This document shows, one piece after another, positions 1,032 through 24,454 of a stretch of DNA of 64,000 nucleotides (position 1 is its first letter; every line of letters starts with the position of its first letter). Origin of the DNA: Auanema rhodensis (taxonomy: Eukaryota > Animalia > Nematoda); the NCBI GenBank assembly GCA_964057225.1, contig OZ059894.1, positions 11,904,001 through 11,968,000 on the forward strand, read 5' to 3'. The notes beneath the pieces are model-generated. The model worked only from the letters and a program-made list of their open reading frames with translations. It made no database searches and was not told where the DNA came from. Position numbers and translations under genes: made by a program.

Positions 1032-1708
1032 TCGTTCTAACCCGTTGAAATACGTCTAGAAAGTCTTTATAACATGCATATGTATGATAGAACTTCATAT
1101 TTATTGTAATAGAAAATTTTATTTTCAGACGTCTTGGTTAACAATGATATGTTTTACCCCCTTATAATTTTTATCATAATGTTCCTTATACGGAACGCTC
1201 AATGAAACTTGCTTCCAGAAAAATTTCTTTCTATTTTTTCTTCATATGTACGTAGATACTATAGAGAACTATGATAGAAAACTTTAACATTCACGAAATC
1301 ATCATTTCTCATTACGCTACGGAGGTTTAAAAAGCTGTGTTTTACCTTATAATAGACCGGAAAACCCTTGTGTTAAAACTGGACCGTTTTTACACATATA
1401 AAAATGTCCCGTATTCGGGACCCTAATGTAACTTTTGATTCCCTATATTTTTTTTCATGAAATTTACAATCTACTGTAGAAAGAAGAATTATTTTTATAA
1501 AAACTGTAAATTTTTGAAAAATGAAAACAAAACGAAAACAAAAACAACTTTTTTTTGAACATTTTCTCACACAAGGGTCCCCCCTTACCTACTTTTTTTC
1601 TCATTACTCGTTTCAACCTCATCCGATCACTCTGCAAACATGTTTAATCGTTCTAACTTGTTGAAATACGTCTTAAAAGTCTAAACAACATGCATATGCA
1701 TAATAGAA
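1032..1708 (+). repeat. Diverged ~60-bp direct repeat pair in spacer (1032-1092 and 1648-1708); every unit
   Basis: tcgttctaacccgttgaaatacgtctagaaagtct..acatgcatatgtatgatagaa vs tcgttctaacttgttgaaatacgtcttaaaagtct..acatgcatatgcataatagaa. Confidence 0.85.
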
Positions 1709-1752
1709 ACCACCCGAATAGGCCCCCACGCACTAAACGAGATATATACATT

Positions 1753-1847
1753 ACCAGTATAGTAATAGAACACATATTGAAGATTAATTCGATAAGAACA
1801 ATTTATTGACGTAGAGAATGTTTGTTCCGAAAAACTACAATATTAAA
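1753..1847 (-). pseudogene. Decayed relic: short-element 3' tail + U2 nt 39-79 + short-element 5' head (present in every unit)
   Basis: 1753-1762 accagtatag = element head; 1763-1803 = U2 39-79 with 5 transitions; 1804-1847 aligns to element tail 2267-2310. Confidence 0.85.
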
Positions 1848-2120
1848 CTATAAAAGTAACAAAAGCGTAGAGGCAGCAAAGACATGAATAAACATAAATG
1901 TAAATACAGAATTACCAGGTAGTACATAAGTATGACAAAAAATTATAAGAAAGCCATGAAAATAGAAGGTTTGTGAACAAATGAGAGGTACATCTTTGAT
2001 CGTATAGTCATTTCTAAACCGTTCGTATGCTGCAGCATCGTCATAAGCGTCACTCAAGTTGAATTTCCATGTGTACTACACGATTTTCATTCTTATTGTT
2101 ACATTCTTTCCCTGAGGGAA

Positions 2121-2266
2121 TGGGCCGTTCCCGCCAGCAGTGCAAGAGCGGGTCGACCCGTGAGGTGGAGCTAGCAAGCCAGCATCTACCTCAAGTCTCA
2201 AAAATCGGTTAACCTTATTGTGAACCAATGGAACACATATCGAAGGTTAATTCGATAAGAACGATT
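2121..2266 (-). pseudogene. U2: U2 3' part (nt 39-184) downstream of short element; representative of 14 such loci
   Basis: Identical to U2 nt 39-184. Confidence 0.95.
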
Positions 2267-3054
2267 TATTGAAGTAGATAATGTTTGTCCCGGAGGACTA
2301 CAATATTAAAATAATTACTGAAGCCCGAAGGCAGCGAGAAATAGTAAGGATACTACCTGCACTGAGTGCGTCGTATCATAAAAAAAGAGATAGCTAATGG
2401 GCAAGTTGAAGAGCTTGAAATTAACAATGACGTCACTAGAAGTAAAGTTTTCTATCTGCAGCTGCGGGTAAAGAGGGTCAGCGTAAGCAGAATTCAATTC
2501 TACCAACAATTAGTGGGAACATTGAGAGAACAGATGAAGGAGGAAATTGTAACTTCAAGTAAAATAGATTATATCTTCAGCTGCGGGTAAAGAGAGTCAG
2601 CTTTGTACAGATTACTAGTTTACATAAGAAGTGGTAACATTTCAAAAAAGGAGCACAACATAAAAAACGAGACTACGGACTATGAGGTAAATGTTATCAT
2701 TGTCTGGATCGATGATTCGGCATTTGATTGCAGCTGCGGATTGAGTGGATCAGCTTGCATGGCGTCCGCATTCGACATCAGGGAAAATGATGAGTTTCTT
2801 GAGGTCCGGCTCGGCGGGCTGTTATGTCCTATTCCCTGTTGATGGTGTTGTTGTCCTTGAGCTTGTTCTTCTTCCCAGAAAAAAAAAAACTGTGAAGCTG
2901 AAGAGTCCTATTAAACGTCTTTAAACGCAAGATTAATAAGAAGCTACTACAGCTAACACAGGACCGCCTCAAGGCCTGGTAGATCAACCAGTGTTGCTTC
3001 AATCACCAAGTATTGCGGCCTGGGCCCTTGGATCAATTCACAACACCAGTATAG
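2267..3054 (-). mobile_element. Short non-autonomous U2-inserted element (788 bp unique), copy 1
   Basis: Absent from intact units; same insertion point as autonomous element; 41-bp direct repeat of U2 nt 39-79 (2226-2266, 3055-3095); ends TTCAATAA(A). Confidence 0.88.
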
Positions 3055-3133
3055 CAATGGAACACATATCGAAGGTTAATTCGATAAGAACGATTACTAC
3101 ACTTTGATCTTAGCCAAAAGGCCGAGAAGCGAT
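3055..3133 (-). pseudogene. U2: U2 5' part (nt 1-79) fused to short element; representative of 14 such loci
   Basis: Identical to U2 nt 1-79, then continues CTATACTGGT. Confidence 0.95.
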
Positions 3134-3575
3134 ACAGCATAGCCATGAGTATCAAAGACATCAAGCAAATGTATCGTACTTGTTACGAGTGCACTCTCTC
3201 ATTTGAATATAAAAGTGTGGTTTGACAATCTTGACTGTACAGGTCATAAATGGCTCATATAAACTGTGGATTTACTCAACTTTTGGACTTATTTTTTTCT
3301 TATTCGAAGCGCTGCACTTTTTTCTATTCTTTTTATTCAAATACTTGTATATAGTTTTATATGTACGGTTGCAAAGTTTCCGAATATTTTATATATTTTT
3401 ATACAATAATTAGGAGAAGGTTAATACAATGAAATCTCCCAACTTTACAGTGTTTGTATTGCTTACAGTATCTAGAACAACCACTCTTGTAATATTAGAG
3501 CACATATCAATCAACAACTTTTTCTAGTTATCAAAGCTTTTTTATTTCTTCAAGATATTTCAAATAAAATATAAA

Positions 3576-3694
3576 AGCTTACGACACCCGGGATTCCCAA
3601 GCCGTCTCCGATCCAAGTACTAACCGGGCCCAACGTTGCTTGACTTGCCAGATCGGACGGGATGGCGTACTTTCAACGTGGTATGGTCGTAAGC
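3576..3694 (-). rRNA. 5S: 5S rRNA
   Basis: Identical copy. Confidence 0.98.
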
Positions 3695-3935
3695 AATGTT
3701 ATATTCTTCATTATCAGTTATATCACTCTAAATCTTGTTGTTAATAGTTAGGACCACAAAGAAAACAACAGGAACAGTAACAAATGAAATGCCCAAACTT
3801 TACAGTGTTCGAGTTATTTACAGTATCTAAGACTACCTCTGTCGTGTTATTAGAGCAAACATTCGATTAACAACAACTTTTTTTTAGTTATCAAAGCTTT
3901 TTTATTTCTTCAAAAAATTTCAAATAAAATATAAA

Positions 3936-4054
3936 AGCTTACGACACCCGGGATTCCCAAGCCGTCTCCGATCCAAGTACTAACCGGGCCCAACGTTGCT
4001 TGACTTGCCAGATCGGACGGGATGGCGTACTTTCAACGTGGTATGGTCGTAAGC
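3936..4054 (-). rRNA. 5S: 5S rRNA
   Basis: Identical copy. Confidence 0.98.
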
Positions 4055-4196
4055 AATGTCATATTCTTCATTATCAGTTATATCACTCTAAATCTTGTTG
4101 TTAATAGATACGACCACAAAGAAAACAACAGGAACAGTAACAATAACAAAAAAAATTTTTTTTTCACCTATGTGTCTAAAGGTTAGCCATGTATCC

Positions 4197-4246
<50 letters not shown>

Positions 4247-5428
4247 ACAGTAAAAAGTCCAATCAAGAGAGAAATTTTTTCAACACATAGTTGTTTTTTT
4301 TTTAAATATCATTGTTTTTCCTCATAACTCGGTTTAAACTCGTTCTAACCCGTTGAAATACGTCTAGAAAGTCTTTATAACATGCATATGTATGATAGAA
4401 CTTCATATTTATTGTAATAGAAAATTTTATTTTCAGACGTCTTGGTTAACAATGATATGTTTTACCCCCTTATAATTTTTATCATAATGTTCCTTATACG
4501 GAACGCTCAATGAAACTTGCTTCCAGAAAAATTTCTTTCTATTTTTTCTTCATATGTACGTAGATACTATAGAGAACTATGATAGAAAACTTTAACATTC
4601 ACGAAATCATCATTTCTCATTACGCTACGGAGGTTTAAAAAGCTGTGTTTTACCTTATAATAGACCGGAAAACCCTTGTGTTAAAACTGGACCGTTTTTA
4701 CACATATAAAAATGTCCCGTATTCGGGACCCTAATGTAACTTTTGATTCCCTATATTTTTTTTCATGAAATTTACAATCTACTGTAGAAAGAAGAATTAT
4801 TTTTATAAAAACTGTAAATTTTTGAAAAATGAAAACAAAACGAAAACAAAAACAACTTTTTTTTGAACATTTTCTCACACAAGGGTCCCCCCTTACCTAC
4901 TTTTTTTCTCATTACTCGTTTCAACCTCATCCGATCACTCTGCAAACATGTTTAATCGTTCTAACTTGTTGAAATACGTCTTAAAAGTCTAAACAACATG
5001 CATATGCATAATAGAAACCACCCGAATAGGCCCCCACGCACTAAACGAGATATATACATTACCAGTATAGTAATAGAACACATATTGAAGATTAATTCGA
5101 TAAGAACAATTTATTGACGTAGAGAATGTTTGTTCCGAAAAACTACAATATTAAACTATAAAAGTAACAAAAGCGTAGAGGCAGCAAAGACATGAATAAA
5201 CATAAATGTAAATACAGAATTACCAGGTAGTACATAAGTATGACAAAAAATTATAAGAAAGCCATGAAAATAGAAGGTTTGTGAACAAATGAGAGGTACA
5301 TCTTTGATCGTATAGTCATTTCTAAACCGTTCGTATGCTGCAGCATCGTCATAAGCGTCACTCAAGTTGAATTTCCATGTGTACTACACGATTTTCATTC
5401 TTATTGTTACATTCTTTCCCTGAGGGAA

Positions 5429-5575
5429 TGGGCCGTTCCCGCCAGCAGTGCAAGAGCGGGTCGACCCGTGAGGTGGAGCTAGCAAGCCAGCATCTACCTC
5501 AAGTCTCAAAAATCGGTTAACCTTATTGTGAACCAATGGAACACATATCGAAGGTTAATTCGATAAGAACGATTA
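5429..5575 (-). pseudogene. U2: U2 snRNA 3' part (nt 38-184) downstream of the retrotransposon
   Basis: Identical to intact U2 copies from nt 38. Confidence 0.95.
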
Positions 5576-8500
5576 ATGGTTTATTGAATAACTAATGTTA
5601 TGATACAATAAATAACCAATAAAAAAGAGCCCAGAATCGGGGAGACGGTATTACCAGTACAACTTAAAACAGCAAGTAATTAAAAAGTACATAATAAGAC
5701 ACATTGCCAACAGAGGCTAAAACGACTCAAGAGTCGGGGGAGTGGGTTAAAAAAAATGAACAAAAAAATGAATATTAAAGCAGAACAATGAGAAATCAAG
5801 TGCCGCTATGATCAAACAATTTGAGTGCCTACGGCAATGATGTTAAAAATAAACAACAAAATACATGTACCAATGAAGGTCAGAAAGAAAGAAACAAAAG
5901 ACAAAAATAAGTAATACAAAAAGTAAATACATTACAATCAAATCACAAACAAGTCAATTGATAATTTCTTCTTCATATTGCCTTACACCAGAAACATGTT
6001 CCACGTAGATATTCCTGGCCCACTTGATGGTATCGGCGACGACGAGCTTCTCCATTAGCCGGTTGTAGTGGCTGCTGATCTTGAGTGATCGGAGGGCTTG
6101 TCCGTTGAGCGGGTCCATAGTTCCAAGCATTCCTACGACATATGCTTCTACACTAGTCTTATAACCAAGACATTGGTATTGGCTGGCTATGTCAGCATAT
6201 TTCCTCTCCTTTATCATACGCGCGGCTATCATGGCTTGACGGCGGTTTTCATAGCTCACTGTAACATCAACGATACTACAGTGTTTTGCGTCATGATCGA
6301 CCACTACTATGTCAGGTCGGAGTGTACTATTAATGCCAGGAAGAGGCTGGTTAGTGTAAACTTCTCCGTTTTTAGGCTCTGGCAGGGCTTTGATAAGACG
6401 GTCCACGATGTTGTTGTGGCGGAGTTGGATTGCTCTCGTGTGAGAGTGGCAGTGTCCAAGAACATGTGCAGCAGTTTCGTTGGAGTAACTACACCTGCGG
6501 CACTGTTTGTTTCCTTCTCCGTGTCTTCTACAGCCATTGAGCTGGAGAGTATTGAGTCGAGCCTTGTGGATGAATCGCCAATCAGCAAACCGTATGAAAT
6601 CTCCCTTCGCCATAAAGTGATTGGACGCTTTGTTGAGCATTGTGACATCAAAGACTTTCCCTTGATCCGGTTTTTGAAGAAGGATCCGAAGGTCTTTCAG
6701 CCATAATGCCCGTCGCAGGCTTCTGTGGCATAGTGAAGGTGTTAACAGTTGGTTGTTTAGATTGAGTTCTAAACCACTTTCGAGGCATGTCCAGTTAGCG
6801 TTGATGAGTTTCTTGAGTTGACGCATCGCTACTCTTACTCTAGTCCAGATGGAGGAAACATCAGATGTTTCGGTGTCGAAAATGCCATCAACGGAACCGT
6901 TGTAATATGCAGCTGTCTCATCGTTACTGGCTTGACGTTTAATCCTTTTTGATGCTACTTTTTTTGAGTCTTGATGCGCAATATCAGCTACTACAAGATC
7001 AGATGACTTCAAAAGTTGGTAGGCATGAGTGACTTCACAGACGTCTGACAGGTGTTGGAGTCGAGAGAGACCAAGTCCGCCGTAGTTAGTTGGCAGGTAG
7101 ATTGGTTCAGCACTGGCGTTTGGAGGATAGTGCATCCATCTACGGGCACAGCGTTTGAGTTCTTTGTCAAAGGCGACTAGTTTACTCTTTGGGACGTGGC
7201 CATTCGTCATATGAAAATTAAGGCAGGGCATCAGGAAGGTGCGTACTGCGTCAGCTTTCTGCCATTCAGCAAGTAAGGATTTGTCAATTTTTTCCAAGTG
7301 TTGACTCATAATATTCACTGTTGGAACCGCAGACTTATGTAAATGCATTCCAGTAGGGATTCCCAGGTGGGAGTAGCTGTCGAATTTGCTGAGAGCGGGT
7401 AGAGAGGAGCTCTGTAGCATGTATGAGGCTGTTGATATTTTCCCTTTGTCGATCGTCAAGGTGGCGCATTTCGCTGGTTTGAAGGTCAAGCCTGTGAAAT
7501 TAGCCGCATTTGATGCTGCGTCCAACATTTTCTGTAGATCTTCTGATGATGAGGAGACCAGGGCAAGGTCATCGGCGTACGCTAGCACAGCGATGTTGTG
7601 ATTGTGTAGCTTATAGCCAGTAGAGGATTCCAAGATGGTTTTAATTAGAGGTTCAATGGCAAGGTTGAACAGGATCGGAGATAGTGGGGATCCTTGTAAC
7701 ACACCTGCATGAACTGGAATGGTCGATGTGAGTCCGGAGCCTGTCTGGATTCTTGTAGAGGCATCTGTGTATAGAGCTCGTACTCGGGATATTGAGGCTT
7801 CAGCCACTCCTGACCATCTTAGAACGTCTAGCAGAGTTTCGTGTGGCAGCGATCCAAAAGCGTTTGCGAGATCAAGCCAAGCAATTGCAATTTTCTCACG
7901 TTTACGTTTAGCGTCCGCAATGGTACTTTGCAACATAAAGTTGTGTTCCATGCATCCAGCTTTGGCCACAAAGCCCTTTTGGGAGGGAGAAAGTCTTTTT
8001 TCTGCTCTTGCCCATGTTAGCAGTCGATGCGTAAGACAAGCTGAGTACGTCTTACCAATTGTGCACGAAAGTGCTATTGGTCGCCAGTTGTTAATGTCAG
8101 CTTTATCACCTTTCTTATGGATGAGGACGGTGGTCGACTCTTTCCAGGAAAAAGGGATGTGTCCTAGCTTGTGTACGGTGTTAAATATCGCTGCTAATAT
8201 GTGACCTCCTTGGTCAAATTTCTTCCAGTGCGAGTATCGAAGTCCATCAGCTCCTGGAGCCGTATCGCTGCAACGTCGTATGCGTTCCCAGACTTCCAAA
8301 GGGGTGAAAACACCTTCTAATGGGTCGGTACTAGCTGGCAAATCCGGTCTGGTGACTGTGATGGGGAGGGCTGGGCCTTGACTGCTGTGAACAGAAAGGA
8401 AATGTTTTTCAACCTCTGCAGATGGTATGGTGCAGGTTTCACTTTGTTCTCCGAGCAGTTGTCGAAAGGCTTTCTTCTTGTTGGCCCTCCAGAGCTTCTG

Positions 8501-9284
8501 GAGCTTCATCGCCTGGGTTTTTTGGTCTTCCTCAGGTTGTGTGTGTGGTCGGCGCCTTTGTCGGAAGTTGGGAACTTTGATCATAATGTCAAGAGACTTT
8601 CTGATTGCGTCTACCAACTCTTCCAGGACCTGCTCGAGCTCACTTTTGCACACAACCTTTTTAATTCTATCCACCCAAGTATTTTCAGAGTTTCTATTCG
8701 GATCAGGGTCGGCAAAAAATGGTTCTGTACTCGAAACCCTGATCTCGTTGAATATTTCACTCTCTCGCGGAAGGGGGGAAACTTCGGCCTCTGGGGACAA
8801 GTCCAGAATTGGGGCCTCAAACAAGCGTACCGTTGATGGAGATCCTTGTTCCTGTCCACTGGATGATGTTTCCTCCATTGTACGCTCCTCCACGGGCGGG
8901 GTGGTCGTCCTTGTGCCTGGTGGGCGGGTGTTCCTGATCCTCCGCAATATAGGGCGGGAACTGGGCTCTCTCGGAGATAGAGGTGAGATCACCACAGTTT
9001 CCTCTATGATGCGGAGGCATCCTTCAGCTTTTTTCTGATGGCTTTTAACGGCCTTCAGATTGCTGGTGAGGCCACAGGCACGGCACTCAAATTCTACTCC
9101 GACCTCATGTTCTCTCCGAAGATGGCGGACGAGACCATTGTGGTCTGAGTAGGATCGCGGAATAGGAGCGCAGATTGAACAAGAAAAAGGGCTCTGAAGA
9201 GGCACCTTTAGCTTGTAAAGCCCTTGCTCCATCTCTAGCAGATCTAAAGACTTACGTAGTACAGTTGCAATATCGATTTAGCCA
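5576..9284 (-). mobile_element. Full-length U2 snRNA-targeting non-LTR retrotransposon (Utopia-like), unique portion
   Basis: Interrupts U2 co-directionally at nt 38/39; 52-nt leader, single ORF, 378-nt 3' UTR ending TTCAATAAACCAT without poly(A); flanked by 59-bp direct repeat of U2 nt 38-96 (5517-5575 and 9285-9343). RLE-type elements targeting this U2 position are the known Utopia family. Confidence 0.93.
5954..9232 (-). CDS. Non-LTR retrotransposon protein (Utopia/NeSL-like, R2-group): N-terminal zinc fingers, reverse transcriptase, CCHC knuckle, restriction-like endonuclease
   Basis: 1092 aa uninterrupted. CSIC..HLRREH and CRAC..SHQ zinc fingers; RT motifs APGADG, LIHKKGD..NWRPIAL, QKGF, WLDLANAFGSLPH, GVLQGSPLSPILFN, YADDL; CRRC..ETAAHVLGHC; RHN; LRPDIVV..IVDVTV..K..KY (PD-(D/E)xK). 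Confidence 0.97.
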   Translation of the reverse strand: MEQGLYKLKVPLQSPFSCSICAPIPRSYSDHNGLVRHLRREHEVGVEFECRACGLTSNLKAVKSHQKKAEGCLRIIEETVVISPLSPREPSSRPILRRIRNTRPPGTRTTTPPVEERTMEETSSSGQEQGSPSTVRLFEAPILDLSPEAEVSPLPRESEIFNEIRVSSTEPFFADPDPNRNSENTWVDRIKKVVCKSELEQVLEELVDAIRKSLDIMIKVPNFRQRRRPHTQPEEDQKTQAMKLQKLWRANKKKAFRQLLGEQSETCTIPSAEVEKHFLSVHSSQGPALPITVTRPDLPASTDPLEGVFTPLEVWERIRRCSDTAPGADGLRYSHWKKFDQGGHILAAIFNTVHKLGHIPFSWKESTTVLIHKKGDKADINNWRPIALSCTIGKTYSACLTHRLLTWARAEKRLSPSQKGFVAKAGCMEHNFMLQSTIADAKRKREKIAIAWLDLANAFGSLPHETLLDVLRWSGVAEASISRVRALYTDASTRIQTGSGLTSTIPVHAGVLQGSPLSPILFNLAIEPLIKTILESSTGYKLHNHNIAVLAYADDLALVSSSSEDLQKMLDAASNAANFTGLTFKPAKCATLTIDKGKISTASYMLQSSSLPALSKFDSYSHLGIPTGMHLHKSAVPTVNIMSQHLEKIDKSLLAEWQKADAVRTFLMPCLNFHMTNGHVPKSKLVAFDKELKRCARRWMHYPPNASAEPIYLPTNYGGLGLSRLQHLSDVCEVTHAYQLLKSSDLVVADIAHQDSKKVASKRIKRQASNDETAAYYNGSVDGIFDTETSDVSSIWTRVRVAMRQLKKLINANWTCLESGLELNLNNQLLTPSLCHRSLRRALWLKDLRILLQKPDQGKVFDVTMLNKASNHFMAKGDFIRFADWRFIHKARLNTLQLNGCRRHGEGNKQCRRCSYSNETAAHVLGHCHSHTRAIQLRHNNIVDRLIKALPEPKNGEVYTNQPLPGINSTLRPDIVVVDHDAKHCSIVDVTVSYENRRQAMIAARMIKERKYADIASQYQCLGYKTSVEAYVVGMLGTMDPLNGQALRSLKISSHYNRLMEKLVVADTIKWARNIYVEHVSGVRQYEEEIIN

Positions 9285-9380
9285 TTAACCTTATTGTGAA
9301 CCAATGGAACACATATCGAAGGTTAATTCGATAAGAACGATTACTACACTTTGATCTTAGCCAAAAGGCCGAGAAGCGAT
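9285..9380 (-). pseudogene. U2: U2 snRNA 5' part (nt 1-96) fused to the retrotransposon 5' end
   Basis: Identical to intact U2 nt 1-96, then diverges 3 nt before the Sm site. Confidence 0.95.
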
Positions 9381-9822
9381 ACAGCATAGCCATGAGTATC
9401 AAAGACATCAAGCAAATGTATCGTACTTGTTACGAGTGCACTCTCTCATTTGAATATAAAAGTGTGGTTTGACAATCTTGACTGTACAGGTCATAAATGG
9501 CTCATATAAACTGTGGATTTACTCAACTTTTGGACTTATTTTTTTCTTATTCGAAGCGCTGCACTTTTTTCTATTCTTTTTATTCAAATACTTGTATATA
9601 GTTTTATATGTACGGTTGCAAAGTTTCCGAATATTTTATATATTTTTATACAATAATTAGGAGAAGGTTAATACAATGAAATCTCCCAACTTTACAGTGT
9701 TTGTATTGCTTACAGTATCTAGAACAACCACTCTTGTAATATTAGAGCACATATCAATCAACAACTTTTTCTAGTTATCAAAGCTTTTTTATTTCTTCAA
9801 GATATTTCAAATAAAATATAAA

Positions 9823-11660: not shown

Positions 11661-11673
11661 TTCCCTGAGGGAA
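11661..11673 (-). terminator. Hairpin immediately 3' of U2 (TTCCC-TCA-GGGAA), candidate 3'-end formation signal; every unit
   Basis: 5-bp perfect inverted repeat directly abutting the U2 3' end. Confidence 0.5.
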
Positions 11674-11857
11674 TGGGCCGTTCCCGCCAGCAGTGCAAGA
11701 GCGGGTCGACCCGTGAGGTGGAGCTAGCAAGCCAGCATCTACCTCAAGTCTCAAAAATCGGTTAACCTTATTGTGAACCAATGGAACACATATCGAAGGT
11801 TAATTCGATAAGAACGATTACTACACTTTGATCTTAGCCAAAAGGCCGAGAAGCGAT
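11674..11857 (-). ncRNA. U2: U2 spliceosomal snRNA, intact
   Basis: ATCGCTTCTCGGCCTTTTGGCTAAGATCAAAGTGTAGTA 5' end, branch-point recognition GTAGTA, stem IIa TATCGA/TCGATA, IIc TTAACC/GGTTAA, Sm site GATTTTTG, loop IV TTGCACT; ~184 nt, 3' end approximate. Confidence 0.97.
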
Positions 11858-14298: not shown

Positions 14299-15086
14299 TA
14301 TTGAAGTAGTCAATGTTTGTCCCGGAGGACTACAATTTTAAAATAATTACTGAAGCCGTTAGGCAGCGAGAAAATAGTAAGGATACTATCCGCACTGAGT
14401 GCGTCGTATCATGAAAAAAGAGATAGCTAATGGGCAAGTTGAAGAGCTTGAAATTAACAATGACGTCACTAGAAGTAAAGTTTTCTATCTGCAGCTGCGG
14501 GTAAAGAGGGTCAGCGTAAGCAGAATTCAATTCTACCAACAATTAGTGGGAACATTGAGAGAACAGATGAAGGAGGAAATTGTAACTTCAAGTAAAATAG
14601 ATTATATCTTCAGCTGCGGGTAAAGAGAGTCAGCTTTGTACAGATTACTAGTTTACATAAGAAGTGGTAACATTTCAAAAAAGGAGCACAACATAAAAAA
14701 CGAGACTACGGACTATGAGGTAAATGTTATCATTGTCTGGATCGATGATTCGGCATTTGATTGCAGCTGCGGATTGAGTGGATCAGCTTGCATGGCGTCC
14801 GCATTCGACATCAGGGAAAATGATGAGTTTCTTGAGGTCCGGCTCGGCGGGCTGTTATGTCCTATTCCCTGTTGATGGTGTTGTTGTCCTTGAGCTTGTT
14901 CTTCTTCCCAGAAAAAAAAAACTGTGAAGCTGAAGAGTCCTATTAAACGTCTTTAAACGCAAGATTAATAAGAAGCTACTACAGCTAACACAGGACCGCC
15001 TCAAGGCCTGGTAGATCAACCAGTGTTGCTTCAATCACCAAGTATTGCGGCCTGGGCCCTTGGATCAATTCACAACACCAGTATAG
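14299..15086 (-). mobile_element. Short U2-inserted element, copy 2 (variant 3' end)
   Basis: As copy 1 but ~9 substitutions + 1 insertion in the last ~115 nt. Confidence 0.88.
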
Positions 15087-15607
15087 CAATGGAACACATA
15101 TCGAAGGTTAATTCGATAAGAACGATTACTACACTTTGATCTTAGCCAAAAGGCCGAGAAGCGATACAGCATAGCCATGAGTATCAAAGACATCAAGCAA
15201 ATGTATCGTACTTGTTACGAGTGCACTCTCTCATTTGAATATAAAAGTGTGGTTTGACAATCTTGACTGTACAGGTCATAAATGGCTCATATAAACTGTG
15301 GATTTACTCAACTTTTGGACTTATTTTTTTCTTATTCGAAGCGCTGCACTTTTTTCTATTCTTTTTATTCAAATACTTGTATATAGTTTTATATGTACGG
15401 TTGCAAAGTTTCCGAATATTTTATATATTTTTATACAATAATTAGGAGAAGGTTAATACAATGAAATCTCCCAACTTTACAGTGTTTGTATTGCTTACAG
15501 TATCTAGAACAACCACTCTTGTAATATTAGAGCACATATCAATCAACAACTTTTTCTAGTTATCAAAGCTTTTTTATTTCTTCAAGATATTTCAAATAAA
15601 ATATAAA

Positions 15608-24345: not shown

Positions 24346-24454
24346 AGCTTACGACACCCGGGATTCTCCGATCCAAGTACTAACCGGGCCCAACGTTGCT
24401 TGACTTGCCAGATCGGACGGGATGGCGTACTTTCAACGTGGTATGGTCGTAAGC
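24346..24454 (-). pseudogene. 5S: 5S rRNA with 10-bp internal deletion
   Basis: ggattctccg instead of ggattcccaagccgtctccg. Confidence 0.9.

Follow-up and report, generated by a model that had tools for sequence, protein, structure and literature searches.

Extra U2 sequence precedes two retroelements inside a U2 gene array of the nematode Auanema rhodensis, and it may well be an inherited part of the RNA that each element copies, namely U2 nt 1-96 in an autonomous element and nt 1-79 in a family of short elements. This reading is held with moderate confidence. The window is the whole stretch of DNA that was analysed, 64,000 nucleotides of contig OZ059894.1 (assembly GCA_964057225.1, positions 11,904,001 to 11,968,000 of the forward strand). 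A broader proposal is more tentative and somewhat doubtful. It holds that a Utopia lineage made U2 nt 1-96, which is everything up to the Sm site, heritable in its own RNA, with the host snRNA promoter as its sole promoter. The head would guide the joining of the 5' end and determine how long the apparent duplication is, each insertion would rebuild a full target so as to permit tandem nesting, and short parasitic partners would carry heads of their own lengths.

All Rfam matches in the window are U2 and 5S genes, which lie on the minus strand in a tandem array, and the window is organised as repeated 5S-5S-U2 units. U2 positions are numbered from one intact gene (Table 1), and this U2 was compared by BLAST with the whole window. 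The comparison revealed 20 U2 units: five are intact, one contains a 3.7-kb element, and 14 contain a 788-bp element. Intact and interrupted units have identical flanks, compared over 400 nt before U2 and 300 nt after it. The U2 parts around both elements are 100% identical to the intact gene, and an intact-type U2 upstream region lies directly ahead of every chimera. The Sm site AUUUUUG occupies U2 nt 100-106. In the fold predicted for intact U2, nt 55-62 (TTAACCTT) and nt 89-96 (AAGGTTAA) form a helix. The units have one or two 5S genes, with or without a short element, and are about 2477, 2947, or 3309 bp long; this variable content points to unequal crossing-over. One 5S copy (window 24346-24454) is shortened to 109 nt and scores 92 bits, compared with 111 bits. 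The host U2 itself is unusual at nt 34-46 (window 11812-11824), where it reads GTAGTA-ATCGTTC, whereas all related loci have the canonical GTAGTA-TCTGTTC. The non-canonical stretch begins immediately 3' of the insertion site, and an additional A is present at nt 31. This deviation after the insertion site may reflect co-evolution of target and element.

Utopia is a U2-specific group of the NeSL clade that bears a restriction-like endonuclease (RLE) and has a precise 3' junction, after which U2 resumes at nt 39 (Kojima & Jurka 2015, PMC4640811). The 3.7-kb element, present once in the window, has one intact ORF of 1092 aa, which encodes N-terminal C2H2 zinc fingers, a reverse transcriptase (RT), a CCHC motif, and a PD-(D/E)XK restriction-like endonuclease, in that order and with no APE domain. 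Residues C911/C914/H923/C928, R972-P973-D974, D989, E995, and K1008 are invariant in the alignment of the ORF with its homologs. A Pfam search of the ORF returned RVT_1 only, Exo_endo_phos was not found, and no Myb family appeared among the Pfam profiles at E<=0.01. The absence of a Myb domain is a criterion that separates Utopia from R2 (PMC13188248). Past the element, the gene continues from nt 38-40 in the numbering of the local 190-nt U2, a sequence with one extra A. The best matches of the ORF are environmental sequences at 59% identity, and the next come from nematodes (Plectus, Panagrolaimus, and Diploscapter) and arthropods (Dendroctonus, ants, and Daphnia). The best named matches belong to species of the published Utopia host groups, such as Dendroctonus ponderosae, ants, and Daphnia, and NeSL-like proteins with an Ulp1 protease are more distant (33-34%). 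A lookup of the exact 1092-aa protein in public assemblies found nothing on record. Judged by its domain order, insertion site, and the hosts of its homologs, the autonomous element is most probably a new member of Utopia (NeSL clade).

Rfam searches at gathering thresholds and at E<=5 gave U2, 5S, and otherwise only chance miRNA-like matches. No ribozyme or other RNA family was found in window 1700-9500 at E<=5 with Rfam models, which can overlook divergent HDV-like folds. A short upstream ORF lies inside the U2 head (window 9292-9314, nt 67-89), with an ATG at nt 67, seven codons, and a stop at nt 88-90; it precedes the element ATG at 9232. Both elements end in CAATAA(A), which may act as a poly(A) signal; cleavage would then occur in the downstream U2.

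Table 1. Features of the U2 array and its two elements, with positions in the window.
Feature	Position	Strand	Basis or remark
Intact U2 gene (one of five), numbering reference, 190 nt	11857..11668	-	Rfam, 148.4 bits
U2 upstream (promoter) region at the autonomous-element unit	9381..9780	-	All 400 nt agree with the five intact genes (0 mismatches)
U2 head, nt 1-96, of the autonomous element	9380..9285	-	Identical (100%) to intact U2 over this stretch
Autonomous Utopia-type non-LTR retrotransposon, 3709 nt	9284..5576	-	Bounds from U2 matches; 3' end ...CAATAAACCAT(TA)
Intact ORF, 1092 aa	9232..5954	-	ORF list, Pfam RVT_1 (E=3e-28), translation
Downstream U2 nt 38-190 (3' part of the interrupted gene)	5575..5423	-	100% match
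U2 head, nt 1-79, of the short element	3133..3055	-	U2 match; same structure in 14 units
Short non-coding element, 788 nt	3054..2267	-	Last ~70 nt alone resemble the autonomous 3' end, patchily
Downstream U2 nt 39-190, short-element unit	2266..2115	-	U2 match
Variant short copy	14299..15165	-	U2 junctions at nt 79 and nt 39 as in the main type; ~750 nt identical, then 10 differences clustered within the final ~115 nt
Old tandem-junction relic, found in each unit of the array (tail of a short element, U2 39-78 at 90%, head of a short element)	1753..1878	-	Sequence comparison

The original prediction placed the ends of the U2 heads at nt 96 and nt 79 with direct repeats of 59 and 41 bp, and U2 BLAST confirmed these values. 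The repeat is 59 bp at the autonomous element (nt 38-96) and 41 bp at the short element (nt 39-79), and it becomes 57 and 40 bp, respectively, if the site lies just after GTAGTA. The 3' ends read ...CCAT(TA) in the autonomous element and ...CAATA(A) in the short element, where the terminal TA or A also matches U2 T38/A39. The insertion may have taken place at the published site immediately behind GTAGTA, and the 3' junction is ambiguous by 1-2 nt. Within this ambiguity, both elements were inserted at the same 3' site, as had been proposed, and U2 resumes at nt 38-40. The 3' ends of elements at eight related loci also lie on U2 nt 38-40, with ...TAA followed by TCTGTTCTTATC. In the predicted fold, the 96-nt head ends at the last base of the nt 55-62/89-96 helix, and nt 79 is the first base past the loop of stem-loop IIb. 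Since nt 96 lies 3 nt before the Sm site, neither head contains this site; the predicted fold and the coordinates thus agree with the leader end and the missing Sm site that had been described for the chimeras. Avoidance of snRNP assembly by a head without the Sm site is purely conjectural.

The predicted folds of the chimeric leaders contain a pairing between the branch-point recognition sequence GUAGUA (nt 34-39) and a UACUAC-like motif early in the element body. It spans 6 bp in the autonomous element (9260-9265 with 9342-9347) and 11 bp in the short element (3048-3058 with 3093-3103), on the minus strand. In a sister short element known from an RNA contig, 12 of 13 positions match the antisense of U2 nt 31-43, which is marginal (p ~0.02). 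The pairing could be due to chance or shared ancestry, and it might, going by these modelled folds, be part of the head system. The 5' ends of the elements were also considered as older, degenerate U2 heads; this candidate was rejected, as the similarity was not significant (p ~0.15-0.2 for the autonomous element and ~0.3-0.5 for the short element).

The short element is plausibly the non-autonomous partner of the autonomous element, a link drawn from the 3' terminal module shared by the two sequences. Of the 13 other short copies, twelve match the first at 100% identity and one has a difference at a single position. Identical copies with identical flanks indicate that the short copies multiplied together with the array, so that they represent about one modern insertion. 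They are 14 near-identical array duplicates and not many independent insertions. The variant short copy may be a second modern insertion. It is a mosaic with differences confined to its 3' end (window 14299-14415), which points to a second subfamily as partner in recombination or template switching.

A degenerate U2 39-78 fragment also lies in the spacer of every unit, approximately 310 bp downstream of U2. At this relic, the tail of a short element is followed by U2 39-78 at 90% identity, an A, and CTATACTGGT, so G79 has been replaced by A. Read from its sequence, the relic is an old element-U2-element tandem junction that arose in an event independent of the modern insertion. The nt-79 boundary is thus common to the modern short element, the copy with the variant 3' end, and a relic that has diverged by about 10%. 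A relic with this boundary had been described earlier and was confirmed, apart from the change at position 79. The element-U2-element order of the relic junction also proves the further claim that the regenerated target is used for tandem insertion.

Under inheritance of the head, the cycle would begin with a copy that has no recognised promoter or ribozyme and lies directly behind an intact U2 promoter. Transcription of this copy would begin at U2 +1 and extend across the head into the element. The bottom strand of a new target would be nicked at nt 38-40 for target-primed reverse transcription, and the cDNA would end with a 3' end complementary to the U2 head. This end would anneal to the target, where the end of the heteroduplex would fix both the top-strand cut and the start of second-strand synthesis. 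The new copy would repeat the head length of its parent, giving a 'duplication' of family-specific length, and each insertion would leave a complete target upstream for further tandem insertion. New head lengths would arise from aberrant integration or template switching to U2 RNA and would be inherited afterwards.

This cycle is the best fit for several observations. It explains two families that share a 3' module and have reproducible heads of 79 and 96 nt. A stagger fixed by a shared protein is expected to give equal head lengths, so the observed difference counts in favour of an inherited head. It also best explains the range of head lengths among relatives, from about 12 nt to the whole U2, and the lack of any detected promoter or ribozyme in the element together with the intact U2 promoter upstream. 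It counts against this reading that the window offers a single autonomous copy and what amounts to one modern short insertion. A second point against it is that snRNA-type promoters are not known to make long mRNAs.

The relatives come from metagenomes. Most of 80 metagenome loci are distant non-Utopia RTs without U2 flanks, and a U2 flank is absent at L001, L086, and L089. Locus L002 has the 3' junction alone; the start of its contig may correspond to U2 nt ~60-68 and was not counted. Locus L085 consists of tandem 7.3-kb units with U2 39-192 and no U2 5' part, which leaves its 5' boundary undefined, and at L005 U2 40-57 is followed by non-U2 sequence. In the soil-metagenome contig L003 (6179-11323), U2 nt 40-192 follows the element, and its 5' end is abutted by a complete U2 (184 bits), the join lying only a few nt from where stem-loop IV ends. 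At L004, U2 1-51 is joined directly to the element. At the protein level L003 and L004 have 62% identity, and their elements share the 5' start TCAGTGTATA, so homologous 5' ends are joined to very different U2 positions. Locus L088 (1-4960) contains two different Utopia copies in tandem with U2 39-59 alone between them; the downstream ORF of this locus has a GATA-type zinc finger (Pfam PF00320). As far as these sequences can tell, a single fixed nick stagger explains the varied head lengths among relatives poorly.

DNA contigs from two related organisms (B and D) contain the element at 98-99% identity as well as the relic junction. They also contain U2 ends at nt 78-80 beside unrelated short inserts of 17 and 25 nt. 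The 17-nt insert, AAATTTTGGTATTTCAT, belongs to a 56-bp tandem satellite composed of U2 40-78 plus 17 nt (runs X2 and X8), which is reminiscent of the U2_sat of Ciona YURE elements. The 25-nt insert occurs in a junction of the form U2(...80) + 25 nt + U2(48...), and a contig of organism B reads U2(...190) + 11 nt + U2(38...). Such junctions at nt 78-80 and nt 190 beside short inserts show that a U2 extension can arise without an inherited head. The idea of element-encoded U2 leaders in the original prediction is therefore upheld in part: it agrees with the family-specific, reproducible boundaries and the varied heads of relatives and is weakened by the nt 78-80 endpoint beside unrelated inserts. 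Several other element 3' ends in the related organisms (runs X2 and X8) are joined to U2 nt 38-45.

The alternative that survives best, although we consider it unlikely, is a classical long target-site duplication (TSD). The endonuclease or a repair step would break the top strand approximately 41 or 59 bp downstream of the bottom-strand nick, and the overlap would be filled in from target DNA, with no U2 needed in the RNA. Both repeat copies are 100% identical to the resident U2, as this explanation expects. The recurrence of the nt 78-80 endpoint beside unrelated inserts in organisms B and D, including the 56-bp satellite, fits a preferred top-strand break. Precedents exist: reptile Utopia elements make 20-bp TSDs (PMC4640811), and an 'exceptionally long' TSD for R9 of rotifers as well as TSDs for CRE and R4 elements are cited in PMC3636483. 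Two lengths in one array, for elements with a common 3' module, are difficult to obtain in this way, provided that a single enzyme serves both, as we infer. A fixed stagger would give truncated copies the same length as well, and the window contains no truncated copies. Overlaps from about 12 nt to the whole U2 among relatives also speak against it, and so does the 153-bp overlap around the 11-nt insert, which ends at the U2 3' end, an unlikely position for a nick.

A second alternative, which appears less probable still, is that the head is added anew at each insertion. When first-strand synthesis finishes, the RT would switch to the top strand of the target or to a mature, truncated, or nascent U2 RNA and copy back to nt 1, and the upstream homology would resolve the junction. 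The endpoints at nt 79, at nt 96, and at the 3' end would then reflect RNA ends or structure and not inheritance. A predicted helix does end with nt 96, nt 79 comes directly after the loop of stem-loop IIb, and the 5' end of the L003 element abuts a complete U2 only a few nt from the mature 3' end. The U2(...190) junction of organism B points in the same direction. Template switching is also the proposed explanation for the U1/U2 heads of SINEU, and chimeras of snRNA and L1 have been described (PMC4494074). A template jump, however, normally arrives at the 3' end of an RNA, and internal endpoints would require truncated U2 species. The nt-79 boundary recurs in events that have diverged by about 10%, which argues for inheritance or a fixed rule, and the boundary differs between the two families. 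The birth of heads by switching or aberrant joins may be followed by their inheritance, so these readings are compatible and not mutually exclusive.

An artefact of assembly or array homogenisation is highly improbable: units are 100% identical over kilobases, as with collapsed or polished repeats, but independent short-read contigs from other samples and organisms hold the element and the relic junction as well as further junctions at U2 nt 38/40, unrelated metagenome contigs have the same architecture, and the junctions are sharp and located at the published Utopia site.

Expression was assessed with sequencing runs in the form of assembled contigs, in which RNA runs were flagged 'RNA?' and DNA carry-over is possible. 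Contigs were compared with window 5380-9343, which takes in the U2 head from nt 38 onward, since U2 nt 1-37 is nearly identical to human U2. In two RNA-labelled runs, the autonomous body is represented by three short contigs at a depth of ~3, and the U2 3' half has a depth of ~10. The U2-to-element ratio in two DNA runs is 34:1 and ~600:1, and the comparison of these ratios makes DNA carry-over an unlikely source of the RNA signal. The RNA contigs thus show weak transcription of the autonomous element. A contig of ~800 nt is present in both RNA runs at a depth of 8-12; it starts with U2 nt 50-79 and continues with AACAATCGATACTACACTGGTTCAGTGAAT... This contig is a sister short element with the nt-79 boundary, and a head-body junction is therefore present in RNA. 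The nt-96/element junction occurs in no RNA contig of the two RNA-labelled runs. The chimeric U2-element transcripts that had been predicted to start at U2 +1 are represented by the sister-element junction, which begins at U2 nt 50, and no contig showed a start at +1. The short element of the window itself, with 14 copies and perfect promoters, was not seen among the RNA contigs of the two runs. RNA-labelled contigs of runs X12 and X13 (window 5380-5563) contain the U2 3' half plus 95-225 nt beyond the U2 3' end, and these extensions represent either read-through or DNA carry-over.

SLACS makes a 49-bp duplication. Like SLACS and CRE, which occupy trypanosomatid spliced-leader RNA genes, the autonomous element is an RLE-bearing element inside a Pol II-transcribed small-RNA gene; SLACS and CRE differ in their clade, their host gene, and their two ORFs. 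Transcription of SLACS is reported to start at +1 of the interrupted SL RNA gene (PMC3447711). CRE-clade elements make target duplications (PMC3636483). The same paper cites R9 of bdelloid rotifers (Gladyshev & Arkhipova 2009), which differs in that its target is 28S and its duplication is read as a true TSD of fixed length.

In R2, junctions are uniform, with a length typical of each species, because the RNA keeps upstream 28S sequence at its 5' end and passes it on; earwig R2 even propagates sequence from downstream of the site through its RNA (Eickbush, Burke & Eickbush 2013, PMC3774820). An inherited U2 head would resemble R2 in its co-transcription with the target gene and in the target sequence at the RNA 5' end. 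R2 depends on Pol I read-through and an HDV-like ribozyme, with 9-36 nt of 28S retained (PMC3774820), whereas here no ribozyme was detected and the 5' end would be the U2 start. The head is also longer than in R2 and comprises the whole U2 5' domain. Second-strand cleavage is set by a 4-way junction (PMC6895275), with which an inherited head is consistent. The short element resembles SINEU as a short retroposon that has a U2-derived 5' head and no internal promoter. The U1/U2-derived heads of SINEU are thought to be gained by template switching and its transcription to depend on flanking promoters (Kojima 2015, PMC4494074). SINEU is dispersed outside U2 genes and mobilised by Tx1 (APE-type), whereas the heads in this array directly adjoin a real U2 promoter.

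Among published Utopia families the 5' boundaries vary, with an overlap of 0 bp in arthropods and 20 bp in reptiles, and tandem insertions are known in Nasonia (PMC4640811). In oomycetes, an intact U2 upstream of Utopia was interpreted as a deletion, with an alternative stated, and promoters and transcription are not discussed in this description (PMC4640811). The array agrees with Utopia in the ZF-RT-CCHC-PD-(D/E)XK ORF of the autonomous element, the site after GUAGUA, the family-variable 5' boundaries, the occurrence of tandem insertions, and the host groups of the homologs. Unlike the published families (0 and 20 bp), the overlaps here are 57-59 and 40-41 bp, are family-specific, and are accompanied by a non-coding partner. 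The host U2 also differs, as it reads ATCGTTC and not TCTGTTC right after the site. By analogy with L003, which gives the same picture, the intact upstream U2 of Phytophthora suggests U2 heads and not deletions. The proposed mechanism would be known R2 and SLACS behaviour transferred to a U2 gene and, on this analogy, is not a new principle. The new features are the long, family-specific U2 heads in Utopia and the short partner.

The 5' half of the integration of RLE retrotransposons is the least understood step, and R2 is almost the sole model. A Utopia family with 40-59 nt from downstream of the nick at its 5' junction would be a second natural system in which the effect of the RNA 5' end on second-strand cleavage and duplication could be followed. 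The lengths of the autonomous element and its short partner differ within one array, which allows a direct comparison. The finding also suggests that the pattern of intact U2 upstream of Utopia in Phytophthora should be re-read. If true, it would mean that a protein-coding retroelement is expressed from an snRNA promoter. It would also explain an array in which most U2 units are interrupted while a complete target is kept.
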